Part shown: positions 102-49,793 of the stretch, piece after piece
Layout of the letters: each line of letters begins with the position of its first letter
How positions within the stretch are numbered: the first letter of the stretch is position 1
From: Macrostomum lignano
Lineage: Eukaryota
Length of the DNA: 64,000 nucleotides
Reading direction: 5' to 3'
Assembly (NCBI GenBank): GCA_002269645.1
Contig: NIVC01001201.1
Coordinates: 248,001 to 312,000, forward strand
Program-made: the position numbers and the translations under genes
The notes under the pieces: generated by a model
Databases searched by the model: none
What the model was told of the DNA's origin: nothing
Seen by the model: only the letters and a program-made list of their open reading frames with translations

Positions 102-25571
<25,470 letters not shown>

Positions 25572-35662: not shown

Positions 35663-38600
35663 GTGTTTGTCGAGACTGTGTTTTTCTCTGCTGGCGCTCA
35701 GCGGTGCGGAGAGGCGCAGCGAAGGAAGAGGGGGGAGGGGGTCAGAGAAGAGAGCAGAGCGTTTGGCCACACCGCAAGCCCCCCTCAGACCGCAGACTCA
35801 GCTCTCTTCCGCTCTATCCATTTCTTTTCAAAAAGAGAGCAGGCGGGTCAACGGCAAAGCCTGACTCTGAGAGAAGAAAATGTTGAGGCCAGCGGAGCCG
35901 CTGAATTGAAACTCGTCATCGCTGAAGCTGCTCAAGGCCTCTCCCCAGTTATGATTGCCGACGACTCCGAGCGGGCGCTGACCTCCGGCCTGCTCAGCGC
36001 GCTGGGAACCGAGGCGCGCCAGATCCCGCTGCGCCCGACCACGGCCGGCCTCACCCGGCGGGCCCGCCTGGCCAAGCCGACGGCGCCTCTGCCGCTTGAG
36101 GAAGATGGCGGCTCCGGTGGGGACGGCGTCCTGCAGCTGCCGCTGATCGACGACGCTCGCCGACAGAAGCGTCGGAAGCGGCCACCGGCTGGCGGCTCCA
36201 GTCCGGACCGGCTGGAAGCACTCGGCCCCCGGCGCCTCGGCGCCATCGCGCTGCGCACCACCGTCGAGTGGGTCGGCGACGACCGTCTGGCACAACTGTC
36301 GCTGGGCGGCGGCAAGCCTGCGGCACCTGCTGGCCGCCTGCGCTTGGAGTCGGCCGAGGGTGAGGGTCGCGCCGAACAAGGCGAGTCGGCGACTCGACCT
36401 GCCACGGCCACCGCATCCTGGCGTCGACGCCGCTCGGAGACGTCGCCGAAGCCGATGGCTGCCGATGTTGCCGATTGCGTCAACACGCGCTACGCGGTGC
36501 TGAACGGCCGCACCCGGACGGAGGCCAGCGATTTCGAGGCCTTCAGGCGGCGCTACGGCCGCGGCAGCGACTGGGGTCGCGTGGCGTGGGCGGCCCGCGG
36601 CATGGAGCAGTTCCTCACCGCCTACTCCGTGCCGATCGCCTTCGTCAACGGCGAGAAGCTGGCGGCCCTGGCTGAGCAGCTCGACTTGTCCGGCCGGCGG
36701 CCGACCGGAGCTCAGCTTCTCGACTGTCTCATCAACCGGTCGGACGTGGCGCGGCTGGTGTCGCAGCCCGGCCGGCGGTTCTCCGGCCCGGACGGCCGGT
36801 TCCGAGCCTGCGCGCTCATCCAGGCCCGTTGGCGCGGCTTCGCGCAGCGCCGCCGCTACCTGGAGCTGCGGCGCCGGCGTCAGGCGGCCGTTGTCATCGC
36901 CACGGCCTGGCTGCTGCAACTGCGCCGGAGGGTCGCCCGGGTGCGTCTCAGCGAAGCCCGGTCGCAGCACCTGGACGGCTACAGGCGCAGGCTGCGGCTG
37001 CTCGCCAAGAACTGGGCGGACTGGCAGCGCCAGCGCCGCGTCCTGGTGCACATCCCGTCGGCTGGGCTCTCGGAGCGGACGCGGAGTCGTCTCGGCGATG
37101 ACGGAATCGACCAGCTGCAGGCCGGGCAGATGGCGCGGTTGTGCGACATCCGCGACCCAAATGTGGACGTCGTGCTGGTCTGCCCGCGGCCGGTGAGCCC
37201 GGAGGTGGCGCAGTACTTCAGCCGGCTGGCGGGCCTTCAGCCTGCCATCCGGTCGGGCCGCGCCGAGGACCAGGCGGACGCCAGCAGGAGGTTTCGCCTG
37301 GTGGTGCCGGAGGCGGTCGGTCAGTTCCGCGGGCTGCCGCTGTGCCTGTCCACCCTGCTCAACTACTCGCCGAAGGCGCTCCGCCAGATTCGCGAGGTGG
37401 TGGCGGGCCGGCGGGCCTTCATCGTGCCCGGGCTGGCCTGCGCCGACGACCTCGCCGTGGCCGACCAGCTGGACCTGCCGATCCTCTGCCCGGAGCCCGG
37501 CGCCCTACGGCTGTACAGCGGCAGCGCGGGAGTCGGAGAAATTCTTCGAGCCGCCGGGCTGCCGATGCCGCCGGGCGAAGCCGGGCTGGCGGCGTCGGTC
37601 GAATGTCTGGCAGACAGGCTGGCGGCGCTGGTCACCTCCAACCTGGACGTCGGCCGGTGGCAGGTGACGCTGGAGGATTCGGTCGACGAAGCGGAGGACG
37701 CGGATCGAAGCCGGCGGGTGTTCGACCCGGAGCGACTTCGCTGTCACCAGTGGGCGCTGGAGGAGCGGCAGCGGCTTGGAGAGGCGTGGTCAATGTCTTG
37801 GAGTCAGGAGAGCGTCAAGCTGAAGGTGCTGGAGGAGCTTCACCAGTCCGACTCGGCAGGGCTGAGCGGCCAGTGCGGCCGGGAGTTCCTGGCCGAGTTC
37901 GCCGCTCGCGGAGGCTGCATTCGAGCGTGCGCGGATGGCAGGGCGGCTCGGGTCAGCGCCGACCTCTGCGTTGAGCCTAGCGGAGCTGTGCGGCTCGTCA
38001 GCTGCGCGGACGGCGGCGGCAGCGGCGGTCCGAGGTTCGTACCCCAGTCAGCGCTGCCCCCGAGCCGCCTCTCCGAGCTCTGTGGCCGGCTCGGCTCGGC
38101 CTGCTTCGAACGACGACTCATCGGACACGTCAGCGTCGAGTTCGACGTGTTCCAGGAGGGCGGCAGCTCCGCGCCTGCCGTGCTGACAGCCGGGCTGCGG
38201 TTCGGCTATTCGGACACGGCCGCGATGGCGCAGCTGCTGCAGTTCGCCACCAACTCCAGCCTCGACCCGGTTGGCCACGAGCTCACGATGAGGCGGCGGC
38301 TTTCCGGCGGCGGCGGCGGAGGCGGCAGCAGCGGAGTTCGGCACCGACCGCGCACCGCCGCTGCTGCAGTCGGCTCCACCGGCAGTGGTCGTCAGCGTCG
38401 ATTTGCCGCTCTTTCGGCCGGCCTGCGGCACTCCGGCCTGGCCGCCGTGGACTTCGGCGTCTTCTTCCAGCTGTGCAAAGCCCGTGGCGTCGGGTTCGAC
38501 GTCGCGGACCTCACCGGCACCGTCTTCTGCCTGGCCGAATCGGCTCGGCGCGACCGCCTGTGCGTCCTGACGGTGTCGAACGGGCCGCATCGGGCGCGGG

Positions 38601-38731
38601 CGGAGTTCGCGCGGGTGCTGGCCGCCATCAACGAGGAGCTGGGCGCGGCGGAGTTGTCGAACTTCGCGGACTACCTGCCGCCGGAGGGCGAGAGAGTCGA
38701 GCGGCTGAAGGCGCGGGGCTCGGAGGCCTGA
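35663..38731 (+). CDS. IQCH: IQ domain-containing protein H orthologue; true 5' boundary uncertain (candidate upstream exons ending 35027 and 35315-35424)
   Basis: Uninterrupted 1022-codon ORF. IQ motif ACALIQARWRGFAQRRRY followed by AAVVIATAW, then RVLVHIPSAG, QMARLCDIRDPNVDVVLVCPRPV, RFRLVVPE, LCLSTLLNYSPKAL, RRAFIVPG and LFQLCKARGVGFDV..TGTVF, matching IQCH. AATAAA at 38884. The TTG start in the ORF track is unlikely to be real. Confidence 0.88.
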   Translation: MFVETVFFSAGAQRCGEAQRRKRGEGVREESRAFGHTASPPQTADSALFRSIHFFSKREQAGQRQSLTLREENVEASGAAELKLVIAEAAQGLSPVMIADDSERALTSGLLSALGTEARQIPLRPTTAGLTRRARLAKPTAPLPLEEDGGSGGDGVLQLPLIDDARRQKRRKRPPAGGSSPDRLEALGPRRLGAIALRTTVEWVGDDRLAQLSLGGGKPAAPAGRLRLESAEGEGRAEQGESATRPATATASWRRRRSETSPKPMAADVADCVNTRYAVLNGRTRTEASDFEAFRRRYGRGSDWGRVAWAARGMEQFLTAYSVPIAFVNGEKLAALAEQLDLSGRRPTGAQLLDCLINRSDVARLVSQPGRRFSGPDGRFRACALIQARWRGFAQRRRYLELRRRRQAAVVIATAWLLQLRRRVARVRLSEARSQHLDGYRRRLRLLAKNWADWQRQRRVLVHIPSAGLSERTRSRLGDDGIDQLQAGQMARLCDIRDPNVDVVLVCPRPVSPEVAQYFSRLAGLQPAIRSGRAEDQADASRRFRLVVPEAVGQFRGLPLCLSTLLNYSPKALRQIREVVAGRRAFIVPGLACADDLAVADQLDLPILCPEPGALRLYSGSAGVGEILRAAGLPMPPGEAGLAASVECLADRLAALVTSNLDVGRWQVTLEDSVDEAEDADRSRRVFDPERLRCHQWALEERQRLGEAWSMSWSQESVKLKVLEELHQSDSAGLSGQCGREFLAEFAARGGCIRACADGRAARVSADLCVEPSGAVRLVSCADGGGSGGPRFVPQSALPPSRLSELCGRLGSACFERRLIGHVSVEFDVFQEGGSSAPAVLTAGLRFGYSDTAAMAQLLQFATNSSLDPVGHELTMRRRLSGGGGGGGSSGVRHRPRTAAAAVGSTGSGRQRRFAALSAGLRHSGLAAVDFGVFFQLCKARGVGFDVADLTGTVFCLAESARRDRLCVLTVSNGPHRARAEFARVLAAINEELGAAELSNFADYLPPEGERVERLKARGSEA

Positions 38732-42634: not shown

Positions 42635-45600
42635 ATGTTCCGCTCAGCCAAGAGGACCCTCGCAACCGGCGCTGGCCGATCCGGCTCCTACCTGCGCGAC
42701 ATTCTCGCGCGACCTTCGGGTGGCGTCGAGGCCCCCAGCGACGACGGAGCCAATGACGCCCTCCAGCCGATGCTGCAGGCGTACGATGAGAAGAACTTCA
42801 CTGAGTTGGGACGCCTCCTAGGTGAGGGCGCGAACCCGCACTTGCCTCTCCGGGACAACCGGACGCTGGTGCAGCTGGCCGCCTTCGACGGCAACCTGCA
42901 GGCGCTGCGACTGTTCAAGGAGCAGGGCGTCGATTTGAACCGACGCGGACCGGACGGCAAAGTGCCGCTGCATCACGCGCTCAGTGCCAGGCGGCTGCTG
43001 ACTGTCAAGAGGATGTGCCAGCTCGGCGCCAGTCCTGATGTGCCCTACTCGTCTGGCGCCTACCCGGTACACCGGTACAGCGGCCAGGCCAGTGTGGAGG
43101 TCATCCGATGCCTGCTCAGTAAGTTGTTGAGAAGACTACTTAAGGCTTTGAACCCCAACTAGTTCTTGATCGGGGAAGAAATTGCCTACATTTAGGCTCG
43201 TAAATCACATTATACTCGTAAGAACAATCAGAATAATTGGCAGAAAATTTTAGGCCTTTAAAGCTCTGACTGAATTAAAATCACTGTCAGAGATCACGGA
43301 TGCAGAGTCACCATCATCAGCATAGGAAACGCTGCTGTGTGCGCTGCGTCCTTCTCCCACATTGGCAGCCTCTAAAACTGCCTACCTGCCAAAGGGTGCA
43401 TCTACGAGCGTATTAATCTTGCGAATAGGACAGCAACATGTGCTGCAGCGGTGCGTTGATGAAAACTGCAATCCAGATGCCGCTGCACTCGCAACATTGA
43501 AGGAACAGTTGGCCCAGGTTTTTCAAATACAGATCTATAGTGGCTGCTGCTAAGAGAAACAGGGGTCTGCAGCAAGCAGATAAGGTCACAAAGAGGAAGG
43601 AGCCTTGAACGTCATTCCTAACCCTAACATTTCTGTAGCAGCAAGCCAGGGCTGAAAAGCTTGGTGGCAGCCGTTGAAGCCGCGAATGCTTTCATATAAT
43701 GGGCAACCGAAATCGATTGGTCATATTTCAGCATGCAACGAAGCTCGAGTGTTGCCTTACTAGTGTAGAACAAATACTACTTCCAAGTCGCCAGTAGTAG
43801 CAAGAAATGCGTTTTGCAGTGAAATTTTGGCAGGTTCCTCTATTCTCTTGAAACTCATGCGCTCATTGAACTTTTTAAGTCTTCCAGGCTAAAGTATTGA
43901 ATTCCAGCCAATGGCTTGGAAGCTGGTTTGGCTGGTTCCCATACGAATCCCATCATCTACTGCTTCCAGGGGACTGTAAAGCCAGACTGGACGTGTACGA
44001 CAGGCTCAACAACACTCCGCTGCACCGCGCCTGCCTCGAGGACTCGTTTCACCACGTGCTGGAGCTGATTGACTATTGCAGTGAGCAGATTCTCAACCAC
44101 CGCGGCTACGAGGGCAAGACCGCCTTGCACGTGGCTGTGCTTAACCAAAACCGGCGAATCATTCGCCTGCTGCTCACCCGCGGCTCCTTCGTCGACGTGC
44201 CCGCCAGCAACGGCAAGACGGCCATCGACCTGATAATGGGCGCTAATAATGTTGTGCTCATGAGCGACTTGGCTCATTTCTACACCGACCAGATGTCGGC
44301 GGCGGTGACCGCCACAAGCTTCAAGGAGTTGCTTGACGCGCCGCAATTCCTGCAGTACCTGGGCTTTCTGGACGCTGTGGACAACGAGTTCCAGGTGTGC
44401 AGCGTGCCGTACATTGACCTAGGCGAGGAGGAAGAGAAGCAGTTACTGAAGAAGGTAGTGAAGGATGAAAACATGGATCTCATCGAGTTTAAGGAGATTT
44501 TGATGAAGCTACTCCAGACCGAGGTGTTCCATGTGCTCTGCGACGAACAGAACGACTCCTTGCTGCGGAGAATGGCGGCCAACGTAGTCAGATACGTGCT
44601 GTTTCGTGAAGATGCAGTCATGTTAAAGAAGCTGGTTGCCTGCGGCCTTGTATGGAACCGTATCGAGGTCCTAATTGAGAACAAGCTCGAAGCGCTGTAC
44701 CTGCATACCCCAGACCGCGGATTCGCTGGAATGCTGACTCACTTCTATCGGCACTTTGCCAGTGAACACAAAGTTCAGTGGGGACATCTGGCTAGGCACT
44801 ACGGCCAGCGTTGCAGCGCCTTCGGAATGCAGGCCGACCGAGGCGGCCTGAACCAGGACGTTGCCTTCCTCCGCCACCCGATGCACACGCTGGTAATTTG
44901 GAGCATCCTGGCCGGCCGCAGCAAGCTCACGGAAATTCTACTACAGCGCGAGAGATTCGACGTTTTGCCGATGTCGCTATTTTGCGCGGCACTGCTCCGC
45001 ACCTTCAAGGACAACCCGAGCGTCAACGTGGACCCCGACAGCCTGGAAGAAAAGGCGCTGGCTTGTGAGAAGTTTGCCGTGAATATTGCAGAGACCGTGT
45101 TTGAGGTGGACACCTCCTATGATAAGTGCGTGACCACCGACTTCCTGCTGTACCCGCTACCCACCTATGGAAACGTTTCCTGTATGGACCTCGCCGCGAA
45201 GAACAGCTCTGCCCTGTTTCTGCAGAGCCCTCCATGCCAGATCGCTCTAGAGAAGAAATGGTACGGCACTCTGTATGATGCGAACGCCATCATCCGCGAG
45301 ATAATTATTTGGTTGGGCGTTATTCCCCTGAACCCAATCATACCGTGGTACCTGATGCGTCAGGAGCGAATCCTGAAGATTATGGACGAGCGGCACCGCA
45401 GCCCCACCAAAAAGAGCAGCTGCGATTCGGCTGAAAGTCAGGACTGCAGCTTCCTGCTGACCGACAGCCCCTCCGCGAAGGATGCCATTGTGGCAGAGAC
45501 TGACCCAGACGAGTCGGCGACGCCGACGGGGAAAATAGCAAAGGCGCCAATGAATCCGCCTCTAAAGAGGACAAGAAGAAGCAGGATAGTAGCGGCGAGC

Positions 45601-48210
45601 AGCAGCACCCAGCAGACGGTGTCAAAAAATCGCCTTCCACCGCGGGGGCCGGAGCGGTGGCGCGCCAGGAATGCTTCTTGTACCGATGGGCGCTGCATCT
45701 GTACGACTTTTACCATATCCCCGCAGTGAAGTTCCGCTACCACGCTACGTCGCACGTAATTATGGTGCTGCTCATGTCATACATCCTGCTCTACAACTGG
45801 GAGTACTCGATTGACATGATTGAGTGCATTATGTACTCCATCGTTTTTGGCTACCTAATTGAGGAGATCGGAGAGTTCGTCAGCATCGTCCGGGAAGAAA
45901 ACGTGAGAAACTTCTTCGCCAGCAAATGGAACATTATCGACATCGGCGCTGTGCTGTGCGCCATGATCAGCTTCAGCATCCGGCTCACTCGCCTCGACTA
46001 CGTCATGGACACGAAGGAAGAGCACTTTTGGATGGACTTTGACGATACCGTCTGGTACATCGCGCGTGTCTTTTTAAGTAAGTTTATGGATGACTTAGCT
46101 GGAATACTTCTGTCAGTTTCGACACCTATTCGTTGAGCTGAGCGCAGAACCTGGTTAAAGCAATGGGTTGATAGAAATAGGCGTGTACGGATCTGCCCAA
46201 ATCAGATGGACCCCTTATTTCAATCCGAATGCAAATGATAGGTCTAGGATGCGGTGATATATGGCGTAGGATCCAGGTTGTTAAAATCCAGGATGTCAGT
46301 CGTAAGATCCATGACGACAGGAGTAGAATCCAGGATTTCAAGAGTCAAATCCAGTATGTCAGGCATAAGATCCTAAGATCATAAGATAGGAGCTAAGTAT
46401 GAAATGATAGAACAGGAATACGAGCTAAATCGGAATTCTGATGGCTACTCGTAGGTTAATCAGTCAGCACGTTTCAATTACAGGCGTCTCCTGCCTTCTC
46501 TACTGGGTCCGGCTGCTGTACATCTCCACGGTGATGGAAACCCTCGGCCCAAAGCTGAAGATGATCGCCCGCATGACCAGCAAAGACATGATCCCGTTCC
46601 TATTCATTCTTTTCATCTTCATATTCGGCTTCGGCGTTCTCATCCACGCGCTGTTGTTCCCGAACGGGTTCAAGGCCTACAACCCGGAGCAGATGAGCTC
46701 GATTGATGTGGTGCTGGCCATGTTCAAAATCTGCTTCTACAGCATGGTCGGGGACTACAGCCTGGATACAATCATGGGTGACGACAGCTGCGATGCGATC
46801 TACGAGAACAAGACGTTTAACTCGAACGGCTGCCCTCACAACACCGGCAGGTCAGAGCCGGATTAACATTCTACCGAATTATTACTGTGTGCGAATGAGT
46901 AGTTCTTTGGCATTCATTGGTGATTCAGTGCCCCAAGAGTTCATCAACCGGTTGGTGATCGGCATGCCAAACAGGGGCATATGGCGCCTTTTTACAGAAT
47001 AGCTTTCGCACCCCTGGAGCCTGGAACTGGCTCTACTTCAAGAAATATCCTTGATACGCTCCTAATGCCACGACTAGTGATGACACAAGCATTCTCGTCA
47101 TTCTTTCACACGTTACTGAAGAAAGGCAGACACATGCAGAGTTGGCATAAGCTTGATACTCAGCAAAGGAAAGCTAAAATCAATGCCATCAATACCTGGG
47201 TTCATTCAGCCAGCGAGCCAAGCTATGAATTGAGGGGGGGCGTAGCCTGTGGTCCAGCGCGGCGCTCTTGTATGCCAGCGGCCCAGGCTCAATTTCAAGT
47301 GCAGTCACATTAAGTTGGGGCAAAATTTGAATCTCCAGCAAAATTTTCAAGATTTGCGAGTCCTTCTGCTTCAACTGTCCATGCTTGATCTTCAATGAAA
47401 ACCTTTCCCAGATATCTGGTGCCTTACTTCGTCCTGCCTCTCTACGTGATCGTTACGGAGATCCTCCTGCTCAACTTGATCATCGCACTGTTCAGCAAGA
47501 CGGTCGACGAGATCGACTCCAATTCCAAGGCCCTGTGGCAGTTCGAACGCAACGACCTCATCGAGGAGTTCCGCGGTCGGACCTCGCTGCCCCCTCCGTT
47601 GAACGTCATCCCGCTGGCCACCCGACTGCTGCTGCACGTCGTCAGGCGGCTCTGCCCGACAGCTCTGCTGCGCTTCCAGAGGGCTGCCCAGTTCAACCAG
47701 AAGCTGATCCTGCAGTTCCTGCTGTTTCAGGTTTGCCTTTGTCGGATCGACGGCTCCCTGAGCTCACTTTCTGAACTCACTCTACTCCCTTAACTCACTG
47801 CCCTGAACTCACTCCTTAAAATCACTCTTGAAATCAGTCTCTGAAACTACTGGCCAGAACTAATCCCTTGAACTCCCTGAACTCTCCGACAGGCGGTGAG
47901 TCTGCGCAACCAGCGCCAGCACATGATGGAGCAGTGCTGTGGCCTCGCCGACGACCAGAGTGAGCAGCTCTGCCAGCGCATCCAGGATATCGTCGAGACC
48001 GAGCTACTGAAGTCGAAGAAGTCCAATGAGCATCAGCCGTCCTCCTCGGCTAAGCCGTCATTGACGAAGCCGAAGACGGACGCGGAGGTGGGCGAGAAGG
48101 AGGGCACCATCGACGCCATCTCGGCGTCAATCATGAACGCTGAGCCGCAGAAAAAGCGGCGCGATTCGCAGCTGTCCGCGGTGTCCCAGGAGCCCGAGCA
48201 GAAGGATTAG
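42635..48210 (+). CDS. TRP channel: ~6-7 N-terminal ankyrin repeats plus TRPM-type MHR3/4, S1-S6, TRP box and short coiled coil; 5 exons, ~1,200 aa; 1-nt frameshift at ~45513
   Basis: Exons 42635-43118, 43970-46077, 46484-46850, 47412-47730, 47893-48210, phases 1/1/2/0 consistent. Ankyrin motifs GKVPLHHA, NNTPLHRAC, GKTALHVAV. TRPM signatures LVIWSILAGR, YGNVSCMDLA..F..PPCQIALEKKWYG, FYHIPAVKF, YWVRLL..LGPKLKMI, ILLLNLIIALF, LWQFERNDLIEEF..SLPPPLNVI. Confidence 0.9.
47234..47333 (+). mobile_element. tRNA-derived SINE head (copy C), degenerate, in TRP intron 3
   Basis: GGGGGGGCGTAGCC...GCCAGCGGCCCAGGCTCAATTTCAAGTGCAGTCACATTAAGTTGGGGC aligns colinearly with the reverse complement of 25038-25137. 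Confidence 0.7.
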
Positions 48211-48834: not shown

Positions 48835-49793
48835 GACCCACTGAATAGCTGGGGAGCACTCCATGACCCACTGAATAACTGGGGAGCACTCCACGACCCA
48901 CTGAATAACTGGGGAGCACTCCACGACCCACTGAATAACTGGGGAGCACTCCACGACCCACTGAATAACTGGGGAGCACTCCATGACCTACTGAATAGCC
49001 GTGAAGCACCGATGACCCACTGAATAGCTGGGGAGCACTCCATGACCCACTGAATAGCTGGGGAGTACTCCACGACCCACTGAATAGCTAGGGAGCACTC
49101 CATGACCCACTGAATAAGCTGGGGAGCACTCCATAACGCACTGAATAGCTGAGGAGCACTCCATGACTCACTGAATAGCTGGGGAGCACTCCATAACGCA
49201 CTGAATAGCTGAGGAGCACTCCATGACTCACTGAATAGCTGGGGAGCACTCCATGACTCACTGAATAGCTGGGGAGCACTCCATAACGCACTGAATAGCT
49301 GAGGAGCACTCCACGACCCACTGAATAGCCGTGAAGCACCGATGACCCACTGAATAGCTGGGGAGCACTCCATAACGCACTGAATAGCTGAGGAGCACTC
49401 CACGACCCACTGAATAGCCGTGAAGCACCGATGACCCACTGAATAGCTGGGGAGCACTCCATGACCCACTGAATAGCTGGGGAGCACTCCATGACCCACT
49501 GAATAGCTGGGGAGCACTACATGACCCACTGAATAGCTGGGGAGCACTCCATGACCCACTGAATAGCTGGGGAGCACTCCATGACCCACTGAATAGCTGG
49601 GGAGCACTCCATGACCCACTGAATAGCTGAGGAGCACTCCATGACCCACTGAATAGCCGTGGAGCACTCCATGACCCACTGAATAGCTGGGTCATGGAGT
49701 GCTCCATGACCCACTGAATAGCTGGGGAGCACTCCATGACCCACTGAATAGCTGGGGAGCACTCCATGACCCACTGAATAGCCGTGGAGCACC
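48835..49793 (+). repeat. 30-bp minisatellite CCACTGAATAGCTGGGGAGCACTCCATGAC, ~32 copies
   Basis: Directly visible, with GCCGTGAAGCACCGAT and ATAACGCA variants. Confidence 0.96.

Follow-up and report, generated by a model that had tools for sequence, protein, structure and literature searches.

An ankyrin-bearing TRPM-like channel gene of Macrostomum lignano and its relation to the flatworm TRPM_MCLZ family

TRPM channels are treated in the literature as a TRP family without ankyrin repeats (PMC7306681). A gene of the flatworm Macrostomum lignano that joins ankyrin repeats to a TRPM-type channel raises the question of whether such a protein is real, where it belongs among the TRP channels and how it arose. 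The gene occupies positions 42635-48210 on the forward strand of a 64,000-nucleotide stretch of contig NIVC01001201.1 (assembly GCA_002269645.1, positions 248,001 to 312,000), which we call the window and whose numbering is used throughout. An earlier note on this DNA, made from the letters alone and correct about the flatworm setting, described a channel in which ankyrin repeats replace the MHR1/2 domain and implied that this layout was new. Domain profiles and structure models confirm, for the protein as conceptually translated, that the locus encodes an ankyrin plus TRPM-type channel with about seven ankyrin repeats in place of SLOG/MHR1-2. With a probability of about 0.82, it is a M. lignano member of a flatworm ‘TRPM-like’ or TRPM_MCLZ-type family and would form a tetrameric six-transmembrane cation channel of TRPM descent. 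The implied novelty does not survive, because an architecture with N-terminal ankyrin repeats and no MHR1/2-SLOG is already catalogued as TRPM_MCLZ (PMC11731825, PMC12861061, PMC10788528).

Domain calls were made on the conceptual protein with one missing base restored, at which point the length of 1,198 residues given earlier is reached. Pfam recognizes ankyrin repeats (Ank_2, 2.1e-20, in two stretches; Ank, 4e-13), the TRPM2-like domain PF25508 (2.8e-9, residues 416-578) and Ion_trans (2.5e-12, residues 768-1025), and exon 1 alone matches Pfam Ank_2, Ank, Ank_3 and Ank_4. LSDAT_euk/SLOG, NUDIX, alpha-kinase and TRPM_tetra have no Pfam match at E <= 1 in the 1,198-residue protein, nor did a SLOG query find a match in it by local phmmer. 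Pfam finds the same pattern in paralogues P0002 and P0003. Profiles directly support about five of the repeats, and the AlphaFold2 model of P0304, a full-length paralogue that is 46 % identical, contains seven helix-turn-helix pairs spaced ~33 residues apart; the repeat count is taken from Pfam and these helix pairs, as a home-made ankyrin-repeat hidden Markov model was too weak.

The AlphaFold2 models of P0304 (mean predicted local distance difference test score (pLDDT) 75.7) and of P0001, the closest database protein (pLDDT 78.5, predicted template modelling score 0.75), agree on the remainder of the chain. After the ankyrins, both are all-helical up to the pre-S1 region, followed by a disordered low-complexity linker, six transmembrane helices and a pore helix, then the TRP helix and long helices at the C terminus. 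Neither model contains an α/β fold that would fit a cryptic SLOG domain. The helical tail encoded by exon 5 is probably a coiled coil, judging from the models. Much of the earlier description therefore holds: the six to seven repeats running from exon 1 into exon 2 come to about seven, the MHR3/4 helices, pre-S1 WxG, S1-S6, paired pore cysteines and TRP box are all present in the alignment, and MHR1/2, NUDT9-H and kinase domains are absent within the limits of the searches above.

Six-frame translation and inspection of splice sites give five coding exons, with every intron GT-AG. The best protein match, P0001 (UniRef, Macrostomum lignano), agrees with the final model at 99.7 % identity across 1,036 residues, and the exon junctions reproduce its sequence. 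The junction of exons 1 and 2 (LLR/DCKARLDVYD, acceptor CAG at 43967-43969) agrees with paralogue P0002 and defines a predicted intron of 851 nt (43119-43969) that splits the ankyrin-repeat domain. An alternative acceptor at AG 43886-7, with exon 2 starting at ~43888, was rejected, as the phase-1 donor would create an in-frame stop (AGC-TAA); the AG at 43968-9 fits the paralogues. The reading frame upstream of exon 1 is open to 42518, and the gene may have extra 5′ exons.

The transition from ankyrin repeats to the MHR region falls at about residue 266/267 (44283/44284), within exon 2. This position bears on whether the protein is a gene-prediction artefact, in which an ankyrin gene was fused in silico to a 5′-truncated TRPM gene. 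Exon 1, with four repeats, is indeed tied to the rest only through the predicted 851-nt intron, and assemblies of M. lignano are redundant and rich in repeats. However, repeats 5-7 and the MHR region share one exon and one open reading frame (ORF), and the same layout recurs in at least ten paralogue groups. At one paralogous locus (L002, NIVC01003499.1), the matching exon is a single unbroken 755-residue ORF running from ankyrin repeats through S3. A 6.8-kb Logan contig (L001, DRR639838, 6,849 nt) likewise carries, at 1298-4516, one intron-free ORF for a 1,072-residue ankyrin plus TRPM-like channel (P0129), and the schistosome relative has been cloned from cDNA and is functional. The fusion artefact is thus effectively refuted, and the earlier claim that the gene model is not mis-joined stands.

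Outside the ankyrin repeats, the protein resembles TRPM channels far more than any other TRP family. A profile built from the three closest paralogues without their ankyrin repeats was searched against all Protein Data Bank (PDB) sequences; the 60 best-scoring distinct sequences were TRPM without exception, led by TRPM3 (2.5e-49) and followed by nvTRPM2, TRPM1, TRPM8, TRPM2, TRPM4, TRPM5 and TRPM7. A second stretch aligned to TRPM3 corresponds to the cytosolic region just before S1. Foldseek comparison of the P0001 model with the PDB returned only TRPM structures among the top 50, at a probability of 1.00. The TRPN-like, many-ankyrin proteins P0017 and P0103 reached 33-37 bits against the non-ankyrin profile, whereas the listed TRPMs scored at least 126 bits. 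The transmembrane region is thus TRPM-type, as had been claimed, with TRPM sequences and folds taking all of these top places rather than TRPC, TRPA or TRPN.

With canonical TRPMs (TRPM1-8, nvTRPM2 and the flatworm TRPM_PZQ), the window protein shares MHR3/4, the pre-S1 WxG, the pore-loop disulfide pair, the S3 motif WNxxD and TRP boxes 1 and 2 (WxxxR and PPP(L/F)N), in addition to the best sequence and fold matches, but it lacks SLOG/MHR1-2, NUDT9-H and kinase domains and has ankyrin repeats instead. TRPA, TRPC, TRPN and TRPV channels also place an N-terminal ankyrin solenoid before a six-transmembrane TRP channel, yet in the transmembrane and TRP parts the similarity is far lower, and these families have no MHR3/4. 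The sister family of TRPM, TRPS (soromelastatin, ced-11-like), shares the TRPM-like core but by its description carries SLOG and often Nudix, whereas the window protein has no SLOG; according to Himmel et al., TRPS channels lack ankyrin repeats.

The architecture is not confined to this locus. When the non-ankyrin profile was run exhaustively with HMMER against 1.84 billion representatives, 2,463 proteins scored at E <= 1e-3, of which the best 150 were examined; in word-index searches, generic ankyrins dominated the results for the full-length query and two non-ankyrin profiles returned M. lignano proteins only. Directly after the query proteins came further ankyrin plus TRPM relatives from M. 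lignano (P0121, P0122, P0124, P0125, P0127 and P0135), and two M. lignano fragment clusters, P0123 and P0138, have the full-length members P0304 and P0305. The next matches were from the parasites Opisthorchis viverrini and O. felineus (P0126, P0276), Schistocephalus solidus (P0130, P0282), Dicrocoelium dendriticum (P0131) and Fasciolopsis buski (P0301); P0128 and P0129 (Logan) and P0142 and P0160 (MetaClust) also belong to this group. All members of sufficient length bear ankyrins and none has SLOG, and past E ~1e-70 the list turns to TRPMs with SLOG, TRPM2-like and Ion_trans domains, flatworm ones first. Every named ankyrin-only member is a flatworm. The same layout, which the earlier note had suggested seeking in other taxa, is therefore found in at least ten M. 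lignano paralogue groups (at the 50 % identity level) and in trematode and cestode proteins.

The published family to which these proteins probably correspond is known from parasites. Park et al. (J Biol Chem 2024) cloned and expressed the schistosome channel Sm.TRPM_MCLZ (Smp_333650), which is Ca2+-permeable, is activated by meclonazepam and had earlier been classed as TRPM7 (PMC10788528). Sprague, Rohr and Marchant (Front Parasitol 2024) described TRPM_MCLZ as lacking an MHR1/2 or SLOG domain (PMC11731825), and Rohr et al. 2026 reported 63 orthologues across trematodes, monogeneans and cestodes, with a duplication of exon 3 (3a/3b) in Opisthorchis, Clonorchis and Paragonimus (PMC12861061). 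We infer that the parasite proteins of our clade are TRPM_MCLZ orthologues from three features of their sequences. First, the pocket residues of Dicrocoelium P0131 (H845/H849, Y882/E886 and R961/Y964) are spaced at intervals of 4, 33, 4, 75 and 3, identical to those in the published Sm numbering. Second, O. viverrini P0126 (T265_12782, 1,906 residues) contains two tandem units from MHR4 to TRP (residues 414-1004 and 1145-1690), which fits the published exon 3a/3b duplication; its gene model probably joins two mutually exclusive exons. Third, two members of the clade are annotated ‘TRPM7’.

Similar to TRPM_MCLZ, the window protein has ankyrins in place of MHR1/2-SLOG, MHR3/4-type helices, TRPM-type S1-S6, a TRP helix and a short, enzyme-free helical C terminus. 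There are differences. The selectivity filter is VG(D/E)Y here and of the FEVS type in the trematode and cestode proteins, the TRP box reads WQFER rather than WLA(D/E/G)R, and the S3-S4 loop of the window protein is five residues longer. M. lignano also has at least ten paralogue groups, whereas the parasite gene is treated as single in the literature.

The likeness extends to the ligand pocket. The published VSLD pocket of Sm.TRPM_MCLZ consists of H827, H831, Y864, E868, R943, H946, Y1117, R1120 and T1121; among the 63 orthologues, H831 (S1) and R943 (S4) are invariant and H827, Y864, E868 and Y1117 are well conserved. By alignment, the corresponding residues of the window protein are H753, H757, Y790, E794, R874, Y877, F1040, R1043 and T1044. 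Seven of the nine are thus kept, including both invariant positions (H757 and R874), so that the S1 His-x3-His, the S2 Tyr-x3-Glu, the S4 Arg and the Arg-Thr of the TRP helix are common to both. The two substitutions, Y877 for H946 and F1040 for Y1117, have counterparts in parasites: a Phe at the Y1117 position is reported in Gyrodactylus, and a Tyr occupies the S4 selectivity position in the low-sensitivity channels of S. japonicum and Fasciola. In SLOG-bearing TRPMs, S1 has Asn...Tyr where the ankyrin channels have His...His. As a side observation, P0129 groups within the parasite-side subclade, yet its S1 shows Tyr...Tyr rather than His...His.

All trees were distance-based neighbour-joining trees, and Smp_333650 was not among the sequences. 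With MHR4/pre-S1 and S1-TRP combined (442 columns, 117 sequences, Scoredist distances), the clade of all ankyrin channels has a bootstrap of 0.98, rising to 1.0 once two TRPN-like outgroup sequences are removed. In the outgroup-free tree, this clade and eleven flatworm SLOG-TRPMs, themselves grouped at 0.85, are split from the other sampled TRPMs at 0.84. Two one-residue insertions fit this picture: one after the second pore-loop cysteine is common to the M. lignano and parasite ankyrin channels, and the other, in the S4-S5 linker, is present in ankyrin channels and flatworm SLOG-TRPMs and not in other TRPMs or TRPN. In a tree of the transmembrane region (290 columns), the M. lignano subclade has a bootstrap of 0.78 and the parasite subclade one of 0.77-1.0.

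The rooting bears on an option that the earlier note had offered, namely an early-diverging TRP lineage, which would have kept ancestral ankyrins after splitting off before TRPM and TRPS lost them. The TRPN-like outgroup does root beside the ankyrin clade (0.61 in the 442-column tree, 0.38 in the transmembrane tree), and in Rohr et al. 2026 TRPM_MCLZ stands ‘next to’ the remaining TRPMs under the name ‘TRPM-like’ (PMC12861061). Such an outgroup placement, however, is the classic pattern of long-branch attraction, which probably explains the TRPN attachment. Every named member is a flatworm, the TRPM-specific MHR3/4 region (PF25508) is present, and without the long-branch outgroup the clade joins the flatworm SLOG-TRPMs, with which it shares the S4-S5 insertion. 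The clade may be basal, but with the outgroup-free tree placing it beside flatworm SLOG-TRPMs, an early-diverging lineage is improbable and we do not favor it.

We offer one history tentatively, as a possibility below even odds: rather than originating in parasites, the TRPM_MCLZ family would have arisen in the flatworm stem from a SLOG-bearing TRPM by replacement of the N terminus, radiated in M. lignano into at least ten groups, presumably of sensory channels, and been reduced to about one gene in Neodermata. Some flatworm SLOG-TRPMs carry a few ankyrin repeats before SLOG (Ank_2 33-37 bits, above the Pfam cut-off), namely P0148 (M. lignano BOX15_Mlig003066g1), P0152 (Clonorchis sinensis KAG5447154.1) and P0298 (Opisthorchis viverrini T265_14336). 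The tree does not support these proteins as sister or intermediate to the ankyrin-only clade (bootstrap 0.04) and places them instead among the other flatworm SLOG-TRPMs (0.85). TRPMs of the P0148/P0152 type might be relics of an intermediate state or might reflect a separate gain.

The window copy itself is one base short. Its coding sequence of 3,596 nt is not a multiple of three, and relative to P0001 the base is missing at 45517..45518 (+), where the window reads GAGTCGG-CGACGCC and P0001 reads ...DPDESVDADGENSKG (protein DPDES-V-DADGENSKG). The deletion sits in the low-complexity pre-S1 linker; left uncorrected, the frame meets a stop codon at 45727-45729, before S1. P0001 represents an intact product of nearly the same sequence. 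Since the matching exon at locus L002 is an unbroken ORF, the shift is peculiar to this copy or to the assembly and not an intron: it is either an assembly error, an allelic or near-identical-copy difference, or a sign of a very recently inactivated copy. A pseudogene or very young null allele, in which a real 1-bp deletion leaves an ankyrin plus MHR fragment without the channel, would be in keeping with the position of the lesion outside any homopolymer and with the occurrence of many M. lignano genes in several near-identical copies (g1/g2/g3 entries), so that one copy can decay. Yet the frame past the shift stays open, just three of 1,036 residues differ from P0001 and all splice sites are intact, which is consistent with an assembly indel or with a lesion of very recent origin. 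M. lignano assemblies are long-read based and prone to indels. On balance, loss of function of this copy seems less likely than not.

Several observations weigh against assigning the gene to the TRPM_MCLZ family. The joint ankyrin clade has a bootstrap of 0.32 in the transmembrane-only tree. The window protein is ~27 % identical to the parasite proteins, equal to its identity with M. lignano SLOG-TRPMs, and in single-domain phmmer comparisons the ankyrin regions of M. lignano and parasite proteins match no better than generic ankyrins. The orthology of the parasite clade to Smp_333650 is putative, based on residue spacing, a duplicated channel unit and annotations, and the window copy is frameshifted as read. 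There are five coding exons here and three reported for Sm.TRPM_MCLZ, although the three-exon structure merely describes the parasite genes and is not a functional criterion. Finally, the assignment of the M. lignano genes is based on sequence and structure models.

The architecture, the TRPM-type core, the clade membership and the largely conserved pocket are results of this analysis; should the assignment hold, further features of the channel can be predicted from the schistosome relative and from general TRPM knowledge. An ankyrin solenoid of about seven repeats is fused directly to the helical MHR3/4 layer, with SLOG (MHR1/2) absent, and the ankyrin stack probably takes the place of MHR1/2 as the bottom layer in the cytosol, where it would offer a surface for protein interactions. 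By homology with Sm.TRPM_MCLZ, the tetramer would be a non-selective channel conducting cations including Ca2+. The filter, FYSMVG-D-Y, has an acidic residue after the Gly, at the position of the Glu in TRPM1/3/6/7. Gating would proceed through the S1-S4/TRP-helix (VSLD) cavity, the meclonazepam site in the schistosome channel. Because Y877 stands at the equivalent of Sm H946, sensitivity to meclonazepam is predicted to be low, by analogy with S. japonicum and Fasciola. Gating by nucleotides or ADP-ribose, as in TRPM2, is not expected given the absence of SLOG and NUDT9-H. Of the five Ca2+-binding positions of TRPM2/4/5/8, four are kept (E794, N816, D819 and E1039), and the fifth, a Gln in those channels, is Glu here (E797). 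Modulation of the window channel by Ca2+ is possible but speculative.

The features of the gene are collected in Table 1.

Table 1. Exons, domains and motifs of the ankyrin-bearing TRPM-like channel gene (window coordinates)
Feature	Position	Strand	Content or basis
Exon 1	42635..43118	+	start codon, ~40-residue leader, ankyrin repeats 1-4 (residues 1-161 + 1 nt); donor GT 43119
Exon 2	43970..46077	+	ankyrin repeats 5-7, MHR3/4-like helices, pre-S1, low-complexity linker, S1-S3; contains the ankyrin-to-MHR junction
Exon 3	46484..46850	+	S4 to pore loop; junction FLS/VSCLLYW as in P0001
Exon 4	47412..47730	+	end of pore loop, S6, TRP domain, post-TRP helices; junction NTG/RYLVP as in P0001
Exon 5	47893..48210	+	C-terminal helical tail, stop codon; long terminal helix in AlphaFold2 models
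Ankyrin-repeat domain, residues 41-266, ~7 repeats	42755..44283	+	Pfam; seven helix pairs in P0304 AlphaFold2 model, pLDDT 72-92
Helical MHR3/4-like region and pre-S1, residues 267-628	44284..45369	+	PF25508, TRPM3 alignment, AlphaFold2, Foldseek
Pfam TRPM2-like match, residues 416-578	44731-45219	+	
Pre-S1 WYG (W592-Y-G)	45259-45267	+	
Channel core, exons 2-4	45693..47607	+	Ion_trans 2.5e-12; TRPM3 2.5e-49; alignment
S1 KFRYHATSH	45729-45755	+	
S2 GYLIEE	45849-45866	+	
S3 WNIID	from 45927	+	
S4 VRLLYIS	46507-46527	+	
Pore helix and filter FYSMVGDYSLD	46735-46767	+	
Paired pore-loop Cys (C967/C981)	46786-46833	+	
S6	47464-47496	+	
TRP helix WQFER...RGRT (TRP box from W1029)	47536-47583	+	
TRP box 2 LPPPLNV	47587-47607	+	

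Elsewhere in the window, pieces of a polycystin-1/PKDREJ-like gene lie upstream of the channel gene at 8848-22442 (+), with a PKD domain and REJ in the ORF at 11169-14561, further REJ at 15313-16206, PLAT at 20175-21122 and Polycystin at 21618-22442; a second TRP-related gene is therefore located ~20 kb 5′ of the TRPM-like gene. A long ORF at 35663-38731 (+) contains an IQCH-like ATP-grasp domain (8.4e-41), in a stretch whose G+C content of 72 % is far above that of the rest of the window. Minisatellites are dense (1481-5338, 5594-6320, 48835-49792 and ~30 other sites), with examples including a 30-bp unit repeated 128 times, a 17-bp unit repeated 43 times and a 30-bp unit repeated 32 times, the last starting ~600 bp 3′ of the stop codon of the channel gene. 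The arrays give rise to long spurious ORFs and strong GC-skew blocks.

The three TRPM_MCLZ papers contain no mention of Macrostomum, planarians or other free-living flatworms (PMC10788528, PMC11731825, PMC12861061), and a literature search combining Macrostomum with TRPM_MCLZ found no paper that joins the two. That the family occurs in a free-living, early-branching rhabditophoran, and that it has expanded in this animal into at least ten groups at the 50 % identity level, thus appears to be undescribed in the literature searched, which is an incremental advance. The family is a documented counter-example to the view that TRPM channels have no ankyrin repeats, a point already made for TRPM_MCLZ.

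TRPM_MCLZ is a validated schistosome drug target, and all work on it has been done in parasites, whose genetic manipulation is difficult. M. lignano is a free-living flatworm open to transgenesis. Its expanded set of relatives would offer an accessible system in which to study the effect of exchanging SLOG for ankyrins on gating, the endogenous ligands of these channels and the diversification of the VSLD pocket.

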